DNA from: Vitrella brassicaformis CCMP3155
Lineage: Eukaryota; Protista; Chromerida
Assembly: GCA_001179505.1 (NCBI GenBank)
Contig: CDMY01000392.1
Coordinates: forward strand, 24,883 to 88,882
Direction of reading: 5' to 3'
DNA: 64,000 bases
Positions within the stretch are counted from its first letter, which is position 1. Each line of letters begins with the position of its first letter. Positions 43,575-57,016 of this stretch are shown one piece after another. The notes beneath the pieces are model-generated. The model searched no databases. It had not been told where the DNA came from and saw nothing but the letters and a program-made list of their open reading frames with translations. Made by a program: the position numbers and the translations under genes.

Positions 43575-43698
43575 ATGAGCCCGGCATCCATCCATCAAAA
43601 CGGGCCGCAAACATCGCAGGTTGGTGATCGATGAATGATTGATGAGCCAGGCAGATCAAAGAGGCCGGATCAAAGCAATGCCAGCCAACATGTTCGGT

Positions 43699-43737
<39 letters not shown>

Positions 43738-44852
43738 GCAGGCCAACCCAGCCGAGATCTTCCACGGCATCTCTCACGTCAGCACCGACGTCAACAATGC
43801 ATGGTACCCACTGTGCACTCACAAGGAAGTGCCCAAGAAGGGCGCCTGCAAACGCCCCCTGGCCACAAGAATACTCGGGCAGCCCGTGGCCCTCTTTCGG
43901 GACGAGAGCAATACGGTTCGATGCTTCGCTGACCGCTGCCCGCACAAGAACGGTGAGCAGGAGATGGGAGATGCTTATCCACTTGTAAGTGAGTGGCTGC
44001 AGTCGTGTGTTGTGTGTCTGTATGTGTGGTGTGCAGCAAAGCTGTCGGTTGGGCGCGTCGTCAACGGAAAGCTCGAGTACCATCGACAGACAATCCAATG
44101 CAACTTGAACACTCACTGTGATCTGTCTGTTCTGTGCTGCTGTGGCTGCTGTGGCTGCTGGCAGGTGCTTCTATCACGGCTGGCAGTTCGACAGCCACAG
44201 CGGGGCGGTGGACCACATCCCCTTCTTGCTGCACGACAAGAGCATCCCCGCCCAAGCTGTGACAAAGGCCTACCCATGTGTCGAGAAATACAACCTTGTG
44301 TGGGTGTGGCCAGGTGAGATGACAGAACGAAACAAACAACAGCGCCGAGACGGCCACGGACGCATCGGTATTGCCCTGGCTGCAGGTGACGTCGAGAAGG
44401 CTGACGGCGGCCTCATTCCGTTCTTTGAAGATTTCACCGACAGGAAGATGATGTGGTCGGGCTGGTCCCTCGAGACGCCTATTGATCACAGCCTGTGGGT
44501 GGAGAACGTCCTCGACCACGCGCACGTCAACTTTGTCCATGACGGACAGTTCACCTCGCGAGGGCTCGCTTGCCCACTCAAGCAAGTGGTGAGCCCAAGA
44601 CGGCTGCACACACACAGACAAGACAGGACAACAGAGAAGGCAGCTGGGCTCTCCTCGATGGATCGGTGTGTCTGTGTGCGTGCCGTGCCGTGCTGATGGA
44701 TGCAGGTCACTCCGACAAAGACGGGCATCAAAGGAGTTCAGGTGCGTGAGTCCGAGAAGTTTGCCCATGAAGGTCGGTCAATGCACTCACACACAGACAC
44801 ACAGACAGGCCGACAGACAGACAGGGAGGAGAGGGGAGAAGGCGGAACGTCT

Positions 44853-44883
<31 letters not shown>

Positions 44884-46059
44884 CGGGTGCATTCAGCCAC
44901 CAGTCTTGAGCTCGAGTGGGTGGCGCCATGTCTGGGCATCGTGAGGTTGGTCTTTGGCAGCCAAATCGCCAACCTCTACATCTTCGGCGTGCCTATGGGT
45001 GTGCATCAGCCACACCACACAGCACCGCACAGACAGCATCACACAGCACAAGACAATCACGAACACAAGAAGCCCCTCTCCTGTCCGTCTGATGTCTTTC
45101 TGGTCTGTCAGCCCCTGGCATGAGTCGGCTGCTGCTGTCGAGCTATGCGAGTTCCGCGCTGATGGGTGTGACGATGGACCATCTGCCGCTCCCCAGGGGC
45201 CTCAAGTACCTGCTGCAGATGAACGTCCCGTCGCGCGACGCCATCGCCATGACTTCACAGATGCGCAACATGCGCGAGGGGTGCTCACCTTTGGAACTCC
45301 CCATTGCGTGCGACGAGGTCAGTCACCATATCATCGACACACACTTGTTCTGGCACACGAGTACGCACGGACGGCAACGGCATCTCCTCCTTTGTCTGCG
45401 GTGTGTGTGTGTGTGTGTGTGCAGATGGCTGTCATATACCGTCGGTGGCATGCCAGGGCTTTCACTGACGACGTCTGGTGGAAGGGGTGAGTGGGGCGGG
45501 GCGACGGATGAGGCCCACGACAACCCACCGATACAATGTGTGTGTGGCATTCGTTAATGCAGCTGGAACGGCACGCTTGACGTGGAGGATCTGGCCAAGT
45601 CTGCCGGGCAGTCGTGCTTTGGCGCCGCCGCGTGCGGGGAGTTCGAACGAGACGGTGCGTAGTGCTCACATCACCACACAGACAATGAACAATGACCAGT
45701 CACAGACGGCCAGACACATGTATGTATACCTTGCTTCGTGTTGTCGCTGTCTGTCCATCAGTCGCTCGTTCCTCTCTCTGGGCACCGATGTGCGGAAAAG
45801 CCCTCGCCCAAAGATTCGCAAATCAGGTGAGAGAGTGAGGCAAACAGATGACGTACACCCCACCAGCAGCCGAAGGATGCCCACCCACACACGCTCCATG
45901 CGTGTATGTGCCATTCACATTTGTCTCTTTGTGTCTCTGTCTTAGCGTCACGAGTCCGACCCGTTCGCACAACCTCTGTGGAAGAATGCTCTCATGCTGG
46001 CGGCTGCAGGAGCGGTGGGTGCACTCGTCACCTTGCGAGTGGCAAAGCAGACCAGCTGA
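43575..46059 (+). CDS. Rieske [2Fe-2S] non-heme iron oxygenase (PAO/CAO/Tic55-type architecture) with C-terminal TM
   Basis: NAWYP, RILGQPVALFRD and DRCPHKN|AKLSVGRVVNGKLE|CFYHGWQFD give the Rieske CxH...CxxH motif. WVENVLDHAHVNFVH is the mononuclear Fe motif. In-phase last exons end ALMLAAAGAVGALVTLRVAKQTS*. Confidence 0.9.
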
Positions 46060-46906
46060 GAGGAAGAAGGCAGGCAAGGCAAGCGGTCGGGCGATTTGTT
46101 CGCCGCCGTCGTTTTATATGTTTTGTGTCTTCTGGATCGATTGTGTCATCAAATGGTACGTGCGTCGTTTGCCACTTTGAACAGGCCGGCGCTTTTTCTG
46201 CCTTCTACATCGATCGTATTCTCAAGTCTACGCGGCTTTTCACCCGCCTCTTTGAACAGACTGGACATGTGAGATGTGAGATGTGAGATGAGAAGACGAG
46301 AATCCAGTCCGTCGCTTTATCCAGTGTGCGCGTCTTTGTCCGTGAAGCTGCCTGAACAGTCAGTCACGCAGCGGGCGGGATGCTAGAGATGGAAGACATA
46401 CGCTCTCTCTTATGTCATGAGAGAACCCATTTTTTTTTCCAGCGTGAATGCCTTTCGTCCGTGTGTCTTGGTGTGAGTGTGCTGTTGCGCGTGACCCTCC
46501 CGTGTCGATGACGAACAAGTCCGTATGTTTGCTGCTGTTTGTGTGTGGTGAGACGAAGATGGTCTGACGGGTGTCTGTAAGGATGATTGAAGGTCTGATG
46601 GGTGTCTGTTCGGTCCATCCATCTGTTCGTGCAGCAATCGGTCACATACACACCCACACCACCTGGACACATCCAAACGGTCGTCACTTGACACCAGGAA
46701 CTCTCTGTCTGACGTCATAGTAGGGTGCGGTTTGTCACGATAGTTCACGTGAGTGAGGCATGGAACGAGCACTGAGTGAGGCAATGCGCCAGTTGGATGG
46801 CTGCAGCATGACGGGCCTCTTGAAGCGCACAGGCAGCCACAGGTGTGGTGTGTGGTGTTGCGGTCGGCGGTGCGGCGTGTGCGAAGGCAGCGGCTGATGG
46901 ATTGAG

Positions 46907-46948
46907 GGCAGCAGTATCTGTCCATCGGCAGCAGTATCTGTCCATCGG
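46907..46948. repeat. 20-nt tandem duplication
   Basis: ggcagcagtatctgtccatc x2. Confidence 0.85.
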
Positions 46949-47051
46949 TGATCAGTTCAATCACTCATTAGTCCGCACACACATACACACTGCCCACTCC
47001 ATCCATCCCTCTCAATCCATCTCTCTCTCTCGCGATCTGCTAAATGTTATC

Positions 47052-48196
47052 CTACGGACAGTCCATGTCGTCCCACTCCTGCCGCTTGTCACCGACAGAT
47101 ACAAACGCGCCCGACTCAAACTCATCTCTGTCCAGCAACGCCATCAAGCGACTCGTGCTCACATCTACACACCCGCACCAAAACAAACACACAGAGATCC
47201 ACCCGCACCCACAGGTCCGTGTCCGTGCAGTTGGCGTACGTGGGTCGAGGAATCCGTTGGTCGCGTGCAGTCTGCGGCACTCGTCGGTGAATGCCTGGTT
47301 GACACAGCCGTTCTCGACCACAGGCAGCGTCATGCCCGTCAGCATCCGGCCTGGTGCGAAGCTCAGCGTCTTCACATCAACACGAGCACCACCATGGCTC
47401 TCGCCTCTCAACTCGTCCTGCCTCTCTGCCGTGATGACCTTCGTCAACATGGCCCTGCCTGTCTTGCAAAGGCCATATAGGTTGAAGCCCGCATAAGCCC
47501 CAGTGGCTGCGCGCGACGAAATGTCGACGATGCGGCAGCTGCTGACCGGACGGGTGGCCGTGGCCGCTGGCTGCTGCTGCTGAAGCCACTGCAAGAGGAC
47601 TGAGCAGATGACGGTGGGCGCGATGAGGTTGACCTCCATGTTGGTCTGCACTTCAGCTGCGGTCTGGTCCCGGATGTGGACAATCGCACCGAGTGTGCCC
47701 GAGTTCAGAAAGACATACCTGAAAGGACAGACAGGGATCTTCTCCAAGGACGGTTGGCATTGCAAAGCCTTACATGTGGTCGAATGGCCCGTGAGTCTGC
47801 TGTTCTCTCTCAAGGACATCCCTGAACCGCTCGGGAAGCCACTCTAGGTCAGCAAGATCCAACCTGCAATACATGGACGGACGGATGGTCTCATGGTCAG
47901 ATCTATCTATGTCCTCACTGTTTGCCACCTCGCACGCCGCCGTCACTCTGTCGCCGCCCTCACACATGGCCTTCACACGCTCCAGGCCAGCTTCGTCCTG
48001 ACATCCACACAGACGGCCATGCAAACAAATGTGTCCGTCATCCGTACGGAAAGCTCACGCGCGACAGCAGGGTGAGATGGACCTCCTCAACGCCATTCTT
48101 CGCTCCGAAGTGGCGGGCAAACATGGCTGCAATGGCGGCGCCGTAGTTTCGACTTGCACCGGTGACAACCGCCCAGAAGGCACTCATCTGCCGCAT
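47052..48196 (-). CDS. Divergent sepiapterin-reductase-like SDR
   Basis: MRQMSAFWAVVTGASRNYGAAIA, then LLSR|DEAGLE, RLDLADLE, FLNSGTLG, EVNLIAP, RIVDISSRAA, LYGLCK (YxxxK), VKTLSFAPGRMLTGM and LLDRDEFESGA. Collinear with the SPR at 52128. Confidence 0.8.
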
Positions 48197-48522
48197 TCAA
48201 CATTCAGCAGAGATGTGCAGCTGTGTAGATTGACACATCATCATGCCTGTACTAGCCTGACACACATCTGCGCAGGGGCACGTATACCTGATGAGGCAGA
48301 TGACTTTGGCGCGCCCTGACTGCTCATGATACACAGATCTCCTTCTCCAGGTCTTCCCCTTTGACCAGACCTTCCATTTCAGAGATCCGACGTCGCCTAC
48401 TGAGGGCTAAGCTCGCAGCTGCGCGCGGGGGGACGGGCGGAAAGGGAGCGTGAAATAGCGTCGGGGCAGGGCGGCAGGCCAGTTCCACAGATCTGTGTGC
48501 AGCAAGCGAGTTGGATTGACAG

Positions 48523-49714
48523 ATGGCTGGTTCGCCTCAGAAGCTCCTCCTGCTGTACGGCTGCTGCGGTAGGTCACACGTACATTCACACAACACGTGC
48601 TTCAAGCACACGCAGACCAGGCGAGAGAGACCCAGCTGCCCGCAGGCGCCGCACCCGACTGTTGTTCTTTGATTGTCCGAACTGTTCGTTCGTTCCTTTG
48701 TTCGTTCAGGTGATGCGGCGAGTTACCTGTGCGCGGCGTTCCGCAAGCGGACGTGGCAAGTGGTCGGCTGTGACGTCAACAAGGTGTCGTGCAGCCCCGG
48801 CCCCGACCACTTCGTGCACGTGGAAGGCCCGCCGCTGCTGGAGCAGGGCGACAAGGTCACCAGCGACCTGCAGCCCATCATGAAGCAACTCGGGCGCACA
48901 CACGTAAGACAGACACACGTGCAGAGAGAGGGAGAGGGAGGGAGGGAGGGAGGGAGGGAGGGGAAGGGATTAGGTCCGTCTGTCGGTCTGCCTGTCTGTC
49001 TGGATGGATCGATGTATGGATGTATGTGTTGTGTGTGCGATGCCATGCAGTTCGACGCCATTGTCAACCTGAGTGGAGGCTTTGCCCTCGGCGGCGCGGA
49101 CAGTCCCTCATTCCTCCACGACTCATACCGAATGGTACGTACGTACCTACTCGACGTGACGACACACAGACACACAGAGGAGTCACCTCTAGCCCTCTCT
49201 CTCCCTGTGTGTGTGTTGGTCGTGTTGTGTGAACAGGTGAGCAACACGGTGGGGACGTCAATCATTTGCGCCAATCTGGCGACCAAGTTCCTCAAGCCCA
49301 GCGGCCTCATGATCCTTCCCGGGGCCCTCATTGCCCTCAACGCAACACCCAAGATGCTCGCATACGGTTCGCACAGACGTACGCACACACACGATCCATG
49401 CAAGAAATCGTCTCTCTGTGTGTGCAGGTGCGTCCAAGGCCTTCGTTCATCAGATGGTGCAGTCTCTGGCAGAGCCCGGCAGCGGCATGCCGGCCAACTC
49501 GCGAGTGATGGGCCTCCTGCCGTTGGTCCTCGACACCCCCACCAACCGCAAGACCATGCCTGAGGCGGACAAGAGCAACTGGACTCCGCTGGAGGACCTG
49601 GCGCGACTGGTCACCGACGCGTGCGAGCAGCCGACCAGTGTGCAGAACGGAGGCCTCTACGGTCTCAAGACAGAGGGCGGCAAGACCAAATGGACGGAGG
49701 TCAATGTCATCTAG
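48523..49714 (+). CDS. QDPR: Dihydropteridine reductase (quinoid dihydropteridine reductase)
   Basis: FDAIVNLSGGFALG, ANLATKFLKPSGLMILPGA, TPKMLAYGASKAFVHQMVQSLA, GMPANS, and the diagnostic LPLVLDTPTNRKTMPEADKSNWTPLE. Confidence 0.92.
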
Positions 49715-50059
49715 AGAGGAGAGAGCTGGAGAGAGAGGGGGGGGGGAGAGATGAGGTATATGCATATACACACATACATGCATGCATACATCATATTTGA
49801 GAGGGTCTTTTTGGTCTGTTTGGTCTAGAGAGATGCGTAGGGTCTTTTTGGTGCTTCCTACCTACCTTATATGATATCAATTGTATATCCCGATATGTGG
49901 GTGTCAGTGCCTGCGGGTAGGAGAGGGCGGATGCATGAGTCTAGGCAGGCAGAGAACAGACCAAGAACAACCTGGAGATGCCTACCTGGAGATCCGTTTT
50001 ATGTATGTGTGTCACGGCCTTTCTTTTGCATCAACGCCGCGCTGCTCCATGCGCACACA

Positions 50060-51470
50060 TCGGGCCTTTTGTACACGCCCCTCACGCCTGTTGCGTGTCC
50101 GATCAAGTGGTCACGCGACACACGTGGAGGGTGGCTGTGGGAGAGGCCGACGTGAGCGGGGTGGGCAGGAGGCAACAAGCGGCGGTGTTAACATGGGCTA
50201 TCTATCATGCGTCATAAGGATTGACCTTGTGCGAAAGAAATGTCATGCACCGGCTGTCGCTGTCTCACACACGCGGTGGCAACGGAGAAGTGTGAGGCGT
50301 GGTTGGCTCTCATGTTTCTCCGTTGCCGCGGTGTGTGCAAGACAGCAGCAGACGGACGGCGGACTGTGACTGGCTGACTGAGTGTAAGACAGACAATGCC
50401 TCGTGTGTCGTGTTTTCCACCATGTCCTGCCCGCCTCAGTGCATCACTTGGCTGCGGCACAGGTCAATGCACATTTCACAACACTGGAGTGTTGTGTGTG
50501 TGTTGCCGTGATCGGCGGCCCCTGTGCGACGAGCGCGCGCGCGCGTGTGTTGCCGTGATCGGCGGCCCCTGTGCGACGAGCGCTGAGGAAGACAGAAAGG
50601 ATAACACGTTTTTCTGTGAGCGTTGATATCTCTGCGTTGGTTTGTGTGCATACAATGGGATGGATGAGAGGATTCTGTCGGCCCGAACAGACAAACAGCG
50701 TCTGTATAATGCGACTTCAGTCATGCTCACGGTCATAGAACAACACACCGGTCAGTTCCTTCCTCCCAGTCAGCACACACACACACACACACACGCTACT
50801 TTCACACACACCAGCACTAGCACAGTGTTGCAGAAAGGCGCCCTCGCATCGATCAGAGAGGCGTTCTCGTACATTCAGCCATCCATTCAGCCGCCCCCTG
50901 TTGCTGTCTTGCCCTCACCGTGGCAACGGAGAAACATGAGAACCAACCAAGCCTCACACTTCCCCGTTGCCACTCTCGAGGACAGACAACCACAGTCGGA
51001 GCACTACTTTCGTTTCGTTACACTCACACCAAGGTAGCAAGCAGACAAGCAGCCATAGACAATACGAGCCAGCCCTTGCTCTCTCTCTTTCTCGGACACT
51101 CACCCTCAGTCGGCCAGCCACAGTCAGCCGGCGGTCTGTTGCTGTCCTGCCCGCCCCATGGCAAAGGAGAAACACGAGAACCAATCAAGACTCACATTTC
51201 ACCGTTCCCGTGGGGGGTTGCAAGACAGCCGCAGTCGGGGGACTGCTCTACTGTCCTTTCGGACACATTCACACAAATGCAGCAGCAGCAGCAAGCCAAG
51301 TACACAGTGAGTGGGTATACACAACACAAGAAAGCCCTTTCTCTCTTGCCTGCTGCTCACATATGCCTCTCTCGCCCCCGCCCTCCACGTGTGTTGCGTG
51401 ACCACTCCATGGGCGAGGCAACAAACGTAGAGAAGAACGGCAAGAGAGGCAGATGTGTGCGCAGGAACGC
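50060..51470. repeat. Degenerate foldback/inverted repeat containing three copies of a ~55-nt hairpin unit
   Basis: Arms at ~50060-50400 and ~51100-51470 are reverse-complementary; 50106-50131 vs 51381-51406 match at 25/26. Hairpin units lie at 50278-50327 (inverted), 50920-50973 and ~51158-51209. Confidence 0.7.
50496..50583. repeat. ~46-nt tandem duplication in the foldback loop
   Basis: gtgtgttgccgtgatcggcggcccctgtgcgacgagcgc x2, separated by a (GC)n run. Confidence 0.85.
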
Positions 51471-52073
51471 AGAAACAGGTAGTACACAATCGCTCGATCA
51501 CACACACAGGACAGCGCAGCACTCGTGTAAGTACGGCCCCTCCCTCCCTCCCTCCTCGTCGCCTCAGTGGGCTGCATCCTTCTGCTGGTCCCCAGCAGGC
51601 AGATCTGCATGAATGACACACTTATGGGCTCGGTGCTCTGCACACGTCTGGGCGCACGTCTGGCGTACCTCATGGGCGTGCGTCGCCACGGTGCCTTCAT
51701 CGGTCAGGATGCACTGGTGCACGTGCGTGCAGGCCGCCCACGCATCACCGCCCTCACCGGGCGGCCGTCTGCTTGCGGCATTCGCGCGCTTCCTTCCACC
51801 AGAGGGGCCCCGAAGATTCCGCCACTCCAGTGTTGTCAGGCTCTTGCTCGACGGTCACACAGCACCTGCTCGAAGGTAATCTGCTCAGTCCACACACATC
51901 AGCAGAGAGGGAGAGAAACGGCAGACATGGATGTAGAGGCACATAACACTCACAATCTGAGTCCATCTGCATGTGGGATCTTTCAATCGTACCCATGACG
52001 GAGGGATCTTTGATGAGGGCGGCCTCAGGGAGGTCGGGGAAAACGAACGCTCCCGTCCACCAAGCTCGCAGAG

Positions 52074-52094
52074 AAACCCTAAACCCTGAACCCT
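52074..52094. repeat. Telomere-type heptamers AAACCCT AAACCCT GAACCCT
   Basis: Three tandem heptamers 33 nt upstream of the SPR ATG. Confidence 0.8.
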
Positions 52095-52127
52095 CCCAAC
52101 ACGCTATTTTCACACTTCTCAATCACC

Positions 52128-52501
52128 ATGGCCGATCAGCAAGGCAAGACGCTCGTCGTCGTCACGGGTGCGTCCCGCGGCCTCGGCAAAGCCATTGTCG
52201 TGGAAATAGCCAAGGCGCTCAGCAACTCTCCGGCACACAAGAAGACGCACTTTCTGCTCATCGGACGGGTAAGTCAGCCAACAACAGACAGATCCGGCAC
52301 TGGCTGAATGCAAACACGAGGAATGTGCCTCATCTGCGCGTGTGTGTGTGTTGTTTGTGTGTGGCTGCAGGACACAGATGGGATGGAGCAGACGTGGCAG
52401 GAGGCGCAGGACGGCATTGCAGAAGACGCACAACTGACGGTGGCCATCCACAGGTAACAGATAGACAGACAGACAGACAGACATCAGGCCACCTGCTCTC
52501 A

Positions 52502-52536
<35 letters not shown>

Positions 52537-53419
52537 TGCAGGTGTGACTTGGCTGGCCCGTTGGAGGACGTCGGCAGGGCTTTCGACGCCATCCTCTCGT
52601 CCGAGTGGGCAGTATCAGGCCCCTTCCACCAAGTGTAAGGCGCCCACTCTCTCTCTCTCCAACCGACGGCAACCAAAGAGAGCGCACCTGTCCACTGTTG
52701 TCCTCTTACCATGCAGGTACTTCATCCACAACTCGGCCAACACGGGCCCTCTCGACAGCATCCGCGACATCTCTCCGGCCGAGATCCGCACCAACCTGCT
52801 CTTCAACATCGGCTCGCCCTTCCTCCTCACCAGCCGGCTGCTGCGGTTCGTCGCACCGAATGACGGCGCCGCCCCGCCACGCGCCAAGAGGCTGCGGATC
52901 GTCAACATCAGCTCCCTCGCAGCCAAGGTTGCGATTCCCGCATTTGGTCTGTACTGCATGGGCAAGGCGGCGAGGGACATGCTGATGCTCCAGGTGGCCG
53001 CTGAGGAGAAGGGCACCACGGAATGCGATGTCAAGACACTCAGCTATGCGCCAGGTGGGCGCGTGAATGCTTGTGCAGATGGGGGACAGACAGATGTAGA
53101 CCACTGTGTGTGTGGTGTGATTGGTGTGTGCAGGTCCGATGCGGACGGCCATGACTGAGCCTATGTTTGAGGGCAAGTGTGCGTCAGAGTCGATGATCCA
53201 GTCCTTCAGGGACATGGAGAAAAACAACACGCTCGTCGACCCATGTAGGTGCGCCCCCCTCCCCTAACACACACCCAATCTCACTCTGTGTGTGTGTGTG
53301 TAGATGTGAGTTCCCGCAAGATGGTGAGGCTGCTGCTGGAGGACAAGTACGAGGCGGGCGCCCACATCGATGTCTTTGACGAAGACACCGAGACAAATTC
53401 ACAGACGCCATCAAACTGA
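52128..53419 (+). CDS. SPR: Sepiapterin reductase
   Basis: VVVTGASRGLGKAI, LLIGR, RCDLA, FIHNSANTGPL, RIVNISSLAA, FGLYCMGKAARDMLMLQVAAEE, VKTLSYAPGPMRTAM. C-terminal YEAGAHIDVFD retains the SPR substrate-binding Asp. Confidence 0.88.
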
Positions 53420-53862
53420 CTGATCAATACAAACACACACACGTGCTGATGCCTTGTGTGTGTTTTCGGATGGACGAGAGTTTCTTTCTCCGACAGCTCA
53501 TTTGCCTGCTGTCTAGGTACCTTGCGGCTTGTGCTGAGGCAAGTCGTTTGGTTCCTGTGCAGTGGGGTGGTCGAGTGGCTGCTGGAGGAGGGAACTCTCC
53601 ATCCGGTCGATTGCACTCATGGATGTACATGTTGCTGTACAGCAGATGGATTAATGGATGCGTGTGAAGAGGTGCAATCGAGTGTTTGGTGTCCATCCAT
53701 CCATCCGTTGACATCAAGAGCACTGCATCTAATCCAATCCAACACACGCGTCACTCTCACCTGTCCACACACACACATGCAATGAGCCGGTCAATAGAAT
53801 GGATGGCCGTCAGTCCAAGACACCCACCCCCTTCTCTGTCTGCCTGTACAAGACAGGAAGGG

Positions 53863-54189: not shown

Positions 54190-57016
54190 CTATCGGTCGC
54201 CCGCCGAGCCGGACTCGTCGCCCCCCGTCTCTGCCTCTCCCCCCTGAGTCGCCTCCTCTACTTCCGTGATGGATGCACCCGTGTACTGGGCGCTCTGCGC
54301 CAGGGCGGCCGCCATCCGGGGGTTCGGCTGCCCCACGCGGGCCGACGCGCGCACTGGTCTCGGGCCGTCAGGCGCCACCAGTGCGTTGTCCCTCTGGCGA
54401 ATCTGCAGCTGGATGGCTGTCGAGGGGTCCTGCGCGTGCTTGTGCCGCAGAGCCTTCAGCACGTTCTCCTCGGGATTGCTGCACCACTCCGTGGACCAGA
54501 AGTGGCCGGGAGGAGTGGGCTCAGGGAGTGGGGGCTGCATGCCGGGGATCGTGCTGGGGCGGATGATGTAGTTGCTGTCCACGCCCACGCCGATGCGCAT
54601 GAGTTTGTCGAGCTTGAGGCGGCCGCCGAAGAACGCCGGGAAGAGGCTCGCCAACGGCAACGTCAGCTGTCGCCGGCTGTCCCGCCTGCACACAGACAGA
54701 CAGACAGACAGACGACAGACGTTGGATGGATGGATGGATGGATGGACGTTCCTCCCTCCCTCCCTCCCTCCCTCTCTCCCTCCCGCCATCCCTCCCTCTC
54801 TGCCCGCCCCGCCCCGCCATCTCACCCGAGCTGAGTAGCCGACACCCTGAAACGCAGGAAGACCCAGAATACCCCGTCCTCATTGATGGCCGAGCGAGGC
54901 ACGCTGCTGGAGGTGTATAGGTAGTAGGGCTGGTCGCCTGTGGCACTCGGGGGGTGGTAGGGCTCCGCCTGGTTGGGGTCGAAGCTGATGACGCTGTCGT
55001 TGTGGACGAAGGCGTGGTGGCTCGGTGTGCTCGGAATGTCGGTGAGAATGACCACATCACCAGGAGAGCGACCTGCACACAAACACAGGCAGGCACATCG
55101 TCACACACGTCACACGTCACCCACCCACCCACCCACCTCCCCCACCGCCTCACCAGTGCTGCTTTGCAAGAGGTAGAACTCGACACAGCTGCCGTCGTGC
55201 TCGCTGCCGCTCGGCATGTCCAGGGCCATGTGTGCCGACCATGGCCCTTCTGTGAAGGAGGTGCCGGCGTCGTTGTCGGCCAACGGGAACTCGAACCTCA
55301 GCACCAGCTGCTGATAGAAGAGGACGTCATCGTGCTCCAGCTCGCACTGCACGCCCCACTCCCCACCCCTGGTCGTGCCACCCACCGGCCGTACCCCCCC
55401 ACGGATCGGCTTCATGGCCGTGAATTTGGTCGCACCACGAGCCGACACCTTGACGGAGCGGATACGGAACCCCTGCACAAAAAAGATGTCGCCCTGCTGC
55501 AGCCCTTCGAGGTTCGGCTCGGGTAGTTCTGCACGTCGACGAGGCACACCTGACCCTCATCAGCACTACGCCTGACACACAAACACAAGACACCGATGTG
55601 TCGGTCCCCTCTCTCTGCTCCATCCATGCATCCATCTGCCTTGCGCTTACTTGACGAAGTACTGCTCCATATGAGTGTTGTTCATCTCTACCAGCAGCTG
55701 CACCGACCGCGACGCGGAGTGCGGGTGGGCGGGGTGGCCCCCCGTCGTGCACAGGTGGTCAGGCCGCACATGCTCCTTGGCGATGGTGAGCATGCCGCCT
55801 GAGAAGCACGGCCGATGGTACCGCTTCCACGAGAAGTTGACGGGCTCGTAGGTAGGGGGGTCGGTGCTCCAGTCTCCGATGAAGACGGCCGACGGCTTCT
55901 TCGTTAGGTCGACAGTCATGACGTCACGGCGGCGGTCGTAGTCGAACGAGTCGCGGCTCGACCCTCCATCGTGGACGTCGCAGTAGCCCTTGATCCGCAG
56001 AGAAACGGGCGTGCAGACATCGAGAACCGAGCAATAGCCGACGTCCATCTCGTGCCCGATGGCGTACATCTCGCTGAGAGTGTGGGGTGGCCGCTCGAGG
56101 ACCTCGTGGATGAACTCGCGCCGAGGCGTCCACTCGTCAGCATCGTCAGCTGCGTTGCTGCTGCCGCTTCTGGGACAGCACGACGGCCTTAGGAGCTTCC
56201 ATGGATCCGACATGCCTGCTGCAGTCACACCTCGAGCTATACGACCTACACGACCTGAACACGAAACACACACACACACACGGGGGCATCCATCCATCCA
56301 CCCATCCATCCAACTTACGTGCGAAGTTGACCACCGAGTCCTCCGATCTGGTGACGATGGTGGTGCGCCACTCGGGCGGCAGCTCCAACATCAGCTGCTG
56401 CACCTTCACCTCCCCCTCCCCCTCCCCCTCCCACCCAATCTCTATCTTGTTCACCACGTACCCCACCACCCTGTCCCTGATGGCCTTGTCGTCCTTCATG
56501 GTCGGCTTCTCACGCAGCATGAAGGCCAACACGCCGGGCAGGGGCAGGGGCATGCACCCTCGATGCGTCGAAGCGCTCCATGATGCGGCTCACCAGCAGG
56601 TCGGCGTAGTTGTCCATCTCGAGGTAGTTGCAGGCGGACCACAGGTGCTGCAGGCCCGTCTTGGCCGCCTCGTCGCCCTACTGGTCCGCCTCGTCGTCCC
56701 ACTGGTCCCATTTGTCGTCCGACTGGTCCGCTGCCGGCAGCAGGGTGGCTTCGGGGATGTTGCGGATGTACTCCTCGACCGTGCGGGTATCGGCGCTGCC
56801 GTGCAGCGTGGCGAATGTGCTGATGTGCCGGAATGTGTTGGGGTGAATGTTGGGCAGGGAGATCGTGTGGGTCTCCCGCTCAGTGCAGGCCATTTCGCCC
56901 TCCAACATGCGCTCGAAGTGCGGCGACACAGTGACGAGCAGCGACTTCTTCTCGTAGAAGACCTCCTTCTTGAGGCCGACAATGAGCTTCACCAAGCCGT
57001 CCTCCTCATGCGCCAT
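54190..57016 (-). pseudogene. BTB/POZ-domain gene, long paralog, with in-frame TAG and frameshift
   Basis: BTB domain: VKLIVGLKKEVFYEKKSLLVTVSPHFERMLEGEMACTERETHTISLPNIHPNTF. TAG at 56678-56680, then KTGLQHLWSACNYLEMDNYADLL. Frame change near 56540-56575 before GVLAFMLREKP. Four further coding-like exons run to 54190. Confidence 0.7.

Follow-up and report, generated by a model that had tools for sequence, protein, structure and literature searches.

The DNA analysed here, referred to below as the window, is a 64,000-nucleotide stretch of scaffold CDMY01000392.1 (88,882 bp) from Vitrella brassicaformis CCMP3155, in which window position 52128 corresponds to locus coordinate 10001 (placed through P0001, that is, CEM09098.1). 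It holds three neighbouring genes for proteins of the short-chain dehydrogenase/reductase (SDR) type: quinonoid dihydropteridine reductase (QDPR), sepiapterin reductase (SPR) and a diverged copy of SPR that is called A here. An earlier interpretation made from the DNA letters only (the sequence-only reading) had taken the block for a co-regulated mini-cluster that joins the synthesis of tetrahydrobiopterin (BH4) to its recycling. The three genes were found where that reading had placed them, with QDPR at 48523–49714 and SPR at 52128–53419 on the plus strand and A running from 48196 on the minus strand, and UniProt names for all three proteins already exist. The features of the block are as follows.

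47052..48196, minus strand: A, an SPR paralogue (ATG at 48196, stop at 47052), homology model of 293 aa, with RNA contigs
48409..48417, plus strand: AAGCTCGCA motif, copy 1, between the 5' ends of the A and QDPR transcripts
48523..49714, plus strand: QDPR, 5 exons, 246 aa, from the exon model, RNA joints and identity with P0024
49795..52056, minus strand: spliced, apparently non-coding, unannotated RNA, from contigs and a CT..AC joint in X1, X2 and X7, of which the part 49795–50527 may instead be 3' untranslated region of QDPR
50250–50355, 50880–50985, 51115–51230 and 51350–51465: four near-perfect hairpins of ~100 nt (ΔG -62 to -71 kcal/mol, z -4.2 to -7.7)
52062..52070, plus strand: AAGCTCGCA motif, copy 2, in the promoter shared by the hairpin RNA and SPR (transcript ends inferred)
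52128..53419, plus strand: SPR, 6 exons, 293 aa, intact, from the exon model, RNA joints and P0001

The exon models of QDPR, SPR and A were rebuilt by hand from the sequence and then translated, and assembled contigs of four runs were aligned to positions 47500–53450. Three of the runs (X1, X2 and X7, from two studies) are RNA and one (X3) is DNA; the former were recognised as transcriptomes because spliced contigs are present in them, and their contig depth gives no basis for ranking gene expression. With the paralogues QDPR2 and SPR2 on other scaffolds included, the Vitrella total comes to two genes for QDPR and three of the SPR type.

The QDPR model (exons 48523–48568, 48710–48903, 49051–49134, 49237–49366 and 49428–49714) is 100 per cent identical to the GenBank/UniProt protein P0024, named ‘Dihydropteridine reductase’, and all four introns (4/4) appear as GT..AG joints in spliced contigs of X1, X2 and X7. 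Its identity as a QDPR, which the sequence-only reading had proposed, is borne out by a full-length match in the Protein Data Bank (PDB; E = 3e-43 to 1dhr), where dihydropteridine reductases alone pass 1e-5, and by its placement inside the eukaryotic QDPR tree. Like the characterised enzymes (EC 1.5.1.34; PDB 1dhr, 1hdr and 3orf), it keeps the YGxxK, LDTPxNR and WTP motifs, the first two as YGASK and LDTPTNR; unlike them, it has alanine for the third glycine of the nucleotide-binding motif (G19A), the single near-invariant column changed in a 23-sequence QDPR alignment. A word search with the open reading frames (ORFs) of the QDPR exons returned the window's own protein only, the query being diluted by in-frame translation of introns. 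A GGGA-rich run lies in QDPR intron 2 (48916–48971) and interrupts the transcript contigs.

SPR is likewise well defined. Its six exons (52128–52268, 52371–52453, 52542–52634, 52717–53054, 53134–53244 and 53304–53419) encode a protein of the same length as P0001 (CEM09098.1), with exon 4 100 per cent identical, and introns 1, 3, 4 and 5 are present in RNA contigs, intron 2 not being among the joints listed. The match to mouse and human SPR (mouse PDB 1sep) runs end to end at E = 6e-25, against 3e-08 for the next SDR, which upholds the earlier assignment; in bit scores, SPRs reach 85–91 in the PDB search and the next SDR 36. The best NCBIfam model is TIGR01500 at 137.5 bits, ahead of benzil reductase at 101.3; this lies below the equivalog cut-off of 206.55, and the protein therefore falls outside strict curated membership. 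Distant eukaryotic members of a family often fall below a curated equivalog cut-off.

When aligned with mouse SPR and 20 others, dinoflagellate and fungal sequences among them, the Vitrella SPR protein keeps VTGASRGLG, NIGS, NISS and YCMGK, which make up the NADP(H) motif and the Asn, Ser, Tyr and Lys positions, together with GKAARDM, LSYAPGP and a C-terminal SGxH-x-D-x-x-D, all at columns with little or no variation among 22 other aligned sequences. The C-terminal Asp reportedly anchors the pterin in the mouse structure. In its TGASRGLG, its Ser, Tyr and Lys columns, its LSYAPGP and its C-terminal GAH-I-D-VFD the Vitrella protein thus resembles animal SPR (EC 1.1.1.153; PDB 1sep and 1z6z; TIGR01500), from which it differs in its sub-threshold family score and in having HNSAN in place of NNAG. 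Judged by their sequences, both QDPR and SPR very probably encode active cytosolic SDR enzymes that depend on NAD(P)H and serve BH4 metabolism.

Gene A has a different history. It is 34 per cent identical to SPR by blastp, and in a tree built without close non-SPR SDRs it is sister to SPR plus SPR2 (93/93) on a very long branch. Four intron positions and phases are common to A and SPR (after LL(I/S)(G/S)R, before (C/L)DLA, before Y(F/V)(I/F) and after DP), and A lacks the fifth SPR intron, which follows APG; because of the tree and the four shared introns A is regarded as an SPR duplicate. Its best matches in PDB, NCBIfam and Atlas are SPRs, with benzil reductase near (84.8 bits for SPR and 78.4 for benzil reductase in NCBIfam). 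Bacterial benzil reductases and SPR-like SDRs (NF005381, PRK06924) are in fact the second-best family for all three Vitrella SPR-type proteins and are found among structural neighbours in the Atlas, but A shares introns with the Vitrella SPR genes and groups with them in the tree, which argues for a eukaryotic SPR duplicate and not a bacterial import.

The transcripts of A do not carry the frame that homology would predict. The homology model places exons at 48196–48059, 47997–47936, 47863–47774, 47718–47240 and 47164–47052, and the transcript extends from ~46890 to 48413 with an optional 5' intron at 48188–48287. In RNA, exon 2 is 47997–47919 (79 nt), and the junction 47919|47863 is found in X1, X2 and X7 as well as in two independently retrieved A transcript contigs, L130 (JGI/MMETSP) and L131 (Logan ERR558152); it shifts the frame so that a TAG is reached six codons into exon 3. 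The in-frame donor, GTGCGA at 47935, is unused among the joints listed, beyond which there are 14 more. The 329-aa GenBank model CEM09095.1, named ‘Sepiapterin reductase’ in UniProt, is in frame solely by retaining the 55-nt intron 47864–47918, and it begins at an upstream ATG (48377) by way of a splice (48188–48392) that is not seen in RNA. Transcript-derived ORFs in the protein cluster of A are only 75, 78 and 197 aa long, and the 329-aa protein is probably not a real product of the gene.

The homologous codons of A have also changed at positions that are invariant in the same 22 other SPRs. In the cofactor motif RG[FLY]G has become RNYG; VNISSL is replaced by VDISSR, GKAARD by CKTGRA and APGP by APGR, and the C-terminal H[IVLM]D reads FVS. 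At the catalytic columns A still has Ser, Tyr, Lys and Asn. A word search with the exon ORFs of A returned only the window's own proteins and no orthologue. The sequence-only reading was thus right that A is SPR-like, by descent at least, but its main mRNA is out of frame and it has lost SPR-invariant residues. A probably no longer works as an SPR, and is either decaying or at best the source of a minor splice form product.

A and QDPR stand head to head. The divergent spacer between them had been put at 327 bp; it exists, and it measures 326 bp from ATG to ATG (48197–48522), most of it transcribed. The 5' exon of A reaches at least 48413 (L130 and L131) and the QDPR contigs start at 48435–48438, with an untranscribed gap of ~20 bp or less between them.

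The sequence-only reading had also treated QDPR and SPR as adjacent. They lie 2.4 kb apart but are not direct neighbours, as a separate non-coding transcription unit lies between them. The interval is transcribed at a depth similar to that of the genes, its DNA depth is single-copy, and it contains no annotated gene and no ORF longer than 143 aa, that one of low complexity. The CT..AC joint of its intron (51881–51992) puts the RNA on the minus strand, and its 5' end is at most ~40 bp from that of SPR. The locus therefore consists of two divergent pairs, each with a promoter of its own: A and QDPR stand head to head in one, the hairpin RNA and SPR in the other. The promoter of SPR is thus shared with an unrelated RNA gene and not with QDPR.

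A single palindromic unit accounts for three of the four hairpins in this RNA. One of the three copies is inverted, and long-range double-stranded RNA is therefore also possible. An Rfam search of the whole locus returned sub-threshold look-alikes of microRNA precursors, on the hairpins only. The RNA at 49.8–52.1 kb can be listed as a candidate chromerid locus for a hairpin RNA or a small-RNA precursor. A 27-nt direct repeat on either side of a (GC)n/(GT)n tract (50500–50570) interrupts the transcript contigs.

The sole 10-mer common to the A/QDPR and SPR promoters is AAGCTCGCAG, which contains the 9-mer AAGCTCGCA. The 9-mer occurs five times in the window against 0.63 expected, an eight-fold excess. 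In the Vitrella DNA examined it has nine copies (window 48409, 52062, 57386, 63416 and 63549; SPR2 locus L001 2057 and 9921; QDPR2 locus L006 9855 and 18173), every one (9/9) in a 5' intergenic region, mostly between divergent genes and near the 5' ends of mapped transcripts. The 9-mer is probably a core element of Vitrella promoters in general. The 10-mer was considered as a signal for the pathway and rejected, as it is also found at PP2C/Tim44, LUC7/QDPR2 and other unrelated promoters.

Taken as a whole, the block is best understood, if with some reserve, as an ordinary lineage-specific gene neighbourhood of Vitrella, and it is not a demonstrated metabolic gene cluster. SPR would perform the last reductions of de novo BH4 synthesis and QDPR the re-reduction of quinonoid dihydrobiopterin. 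An ancient duplication of SPR, presumably local, may have left the diverged copy A on the far side of QDPR; A would then have diverged strongly, until its main mRNA came to be out of frame as it is now. The adjacency itself would not be under selection, and no regulatory meaning has been demonstrated for it. In a scan over all pairs of genes of the same pathway in many genomes, such neighbourhoods are to be expected.

Several observations weigh against this reading, and most of them have been counted in favour of a selected mini-cluster of BH4 synthesis and recycling, in which A would be a third specialised reductase and linkage would reflect coordinated control through chromatin or promoters. 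Two genes of one pathway, from different SDR families, lie within 4 kb of each other, and by a rough estimate the chance of this pair is ~1e-3, given two QDPR genes, two independent SPR loci and ~22,800 genes, the number reportedly present in the Vitrella genome. The 5' ends of A and QDPR are ~20 bp apart, which makes for a very tight bidirectional promoter, and all three genes are transcribed (RNA contigs in X1, X2 and X7). The 293 homologous codons of A contain no stop despite 66 per cent divergence, which points to constraint over most of the history of A, and if the duplication was local the A–QDPR–SPR arrangement may be old.

There is nevertheless reason to think a selected mini-cluster unlikely. 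A non-coding unit separates QDPR from SPR and holds the SPR promoter, the motif common to the two promoters is generic, and none of the assembled transcripts seen carries A in frame, which would leave only two functional genes. GTP cyclohydrolase (GTPCH), PTPS, PCD and hydroxylase genes were absent among the called neighbours, window positions 1–42000 not having been scanned for them; the GC-rich sequence there contains 259 open frames of at least 110 aa. The linkage was seen at no other locus examined, the paralogues of Vitrella itself included. The co-regulation proposed by the sequence-only reading accordingly finds no support in the promoters, in the state of A or in other genomes.

That reading had also held that QDPR and SPR belong to distant SDR families, and here it stands: blastp between the two gives E = 0.03, nothing is common to them beyond the SDR fold, and tandem duplication of one gene therefore cannot explain the adjacency. 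Adjacent non-homologous genes of one pathway are thus present, with a non-coding unit between them, and linkage was found at this one locus only. Clusters of genes of one pathway, or pairs that share a promoter, occur in eukaryotes, as in the GAL and DAL genes of yeast and the nitrate-assimilation genes of algae. The Vitrella block resembles these in its adjoining non-homologous genes of one pathway and its one head-to-head pair, but differs in having at most two intact genes, in lacking conservation in other taxa and among its own paralogues, and in the unrelated RNA gene that separates the two.

The search for linkage elsewhere covered paralogous, eukaryotic, metagenomic and prokaryotic loci. 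At the QDPR2 and SPR2 loci no partner gene lies within 10 kb by annotation or tblastn. QDPR was absent near SPR in Polarella glacialis, a JGI eukaryotic contig and Umbelopsis, and SPR was absent near QDPR in Cardiosporidium cionae and a 1.26-Mb eukaryotic contig from ENA. A search with a 5-sequence alignment as query over 80 metagenomic QDPR loci (27 of them at least 4 kb long) and 39 prokaryotic loci returned generic SDR similarity only and no linkage with SPR. Chromera was not found among the 20 named sequences of the 150 best QDPR matches, and the relatives reached are thus a set without it; in none of them is the pair linked, an outcome that the sequence-only reading had itself counted against a cluster. 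In the literature no paper was found that describes the linkage or that ties Vitrella to SPR, QDPR or GTP cyclohydrolase. Biopterin synthesis is listed in the chromerid genome paper (PMC4501334) as one of the pathways that are shared only with Toxoplasma.

A second account concerns A alone. It would be a functional, neofunctionalised carbonyl reductase with a substrate other than pterin, made from a minor in-frame form (by use of the donor at 47935, or with the 55-nt intron left in), and the frequent out-of-frame splice would be regulated unproductive splicing. The retained catalytic Ser, Tyr, Lys and Asn fit such a role, as does the stop-free homologous frame. Splice donors at the locus are variable (GTTCGC, GTGGGC and GTATAC), so that GTGCGA is usable in principle, and in the Atlas the 329-aa form is modelled with an SDR fold (pTM, the predicted TM-score, 0.82). 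However, the frameshifting junction is present in five of the five transcript contigs examined, the 90 per cent cluster of the protein holds no transcript-derived full-length ORF, a cofactor-motif glycine and the C-terminal H-x-D are lost, and the word search yielded no orthologue. A functional A is accordingly a doubtful proposition.

The stronger suggestion that A–QDPR–(hairpin RNA)–SPR is an old chromerid unit under selection seems to us quite improbable. Its two bidirectional promoters would couple BH4 synthesis to recycling, with the hairpin RNA or the unproductive splicing of A in a regulatory role. Were it true, eukaryotes would have their first described gene cluster for a pterin cofactor. 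Were the linkage selected, a cofactor pathway would join the short list of eukaryotic metabolic gene clusters and would offer a handle on biopterin regulation in free-living relatives of apicomplexans. Under the reading preferred here, that of an ordinary neighbourhood, the present value of the locus is mainly corrective, and lies in the gene counts, the CEM09095.1 model and the unannotated hairpin-rich RNA gene.

That the adjacency is an artefact of assembly or annotation, such as a chimeric scaffold or mis-joined haplotigs, is most improbable: a near-identical SPR copy does exist on another scaffold and one X3 DNA contig carries paralogue-type bases, but X3 DNA contigs match the window without differences from A through QDPR to SPR exon 1 (47500–48915, 48972–50527 and 50554–52188), and SPR2 is 12 per cent different in nucleotides and has its own flanks among other genes. 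The variant X3 contig was considered as an allele of SPR and rejected; it agrees with SPR2 at 13 of 13 positions and is therefore the paralogue. Horizontal transfer of a bacterial operon was also rejected, as both genes contain spliceosomal introns and the pair was seen at no bacterial locus among those examined. The trees argue the same way: the neighbour of QDPR, in a tree of weak resolution, is an apicomplexan sequence, and SPR falls together with sequences from dinoflagellates and fungi.

The two paralogues on other scaffolds, and the gene that lies beyond A in the window, are located as follows.

L006 10001–11375 (CDMY01000499.1): QDPR2 (P0028, that is, CEM18352.1, 237 aa), adjoining a LUC7 gene and with no SDR neighbour
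L001 10001–11572 (CDMY01000465.1): SPR2 (P0002, that is, CEM15105.1, a 386-aa model), paralogue of window 52058–53605
43575..46286, plus strand: Rieske [2Fe-2S] oxygenase gene, 470 aa, annotated, with Pfam Rieske and VanA_C

QDPR2 is the top match of an exhaustive QDPR search and is 49 per cent identical to the window QDPR. The two are sister in-paralogues (SH-like approximate likelihood ratio test, SH-aLRT, 99), and it is the window copy that has the longer branch (0.94 against 0.69). Both Vitrella copies share YGCCG, an unusual start of the nucleotide-binding motif.

SPR2 is much closer to its window counterpart, with 88 per cent nucleotide identity, introns included, from ~70 bp 5' of the ATG to just before the stop; the similarity resumes over ~150 bp further downstream. 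dN/dS between the two is 0.30. SPR2 exon 2 carries a 1-nt deletion for which the annotation compensates with shifted splicing, and its last exon is 276 nt longer, with a Q/P-rich extension. No RNA contig among those aligned from X1, X2 and X7 carries the SPR2-specific variant bases. At L001 13810–13945 there is a further, isolated copy of the final SPR exon.

As the sequence-only reading had stated, the Rieske oxygenase gene is the next neighbour of A and converges on it, its 3' end lying 766 bp from the stop of A. Its exon ORFs score 38 bits for Rieske and 23.4 bits for VanA_C, the latter slightly below the cut-off, and no connection of this gene with pterins was found. The next gene past SPR (54190–56553, minus strand) is annotated as 640 aa, with no Pfam match on record and none for three of its exon ORFs.

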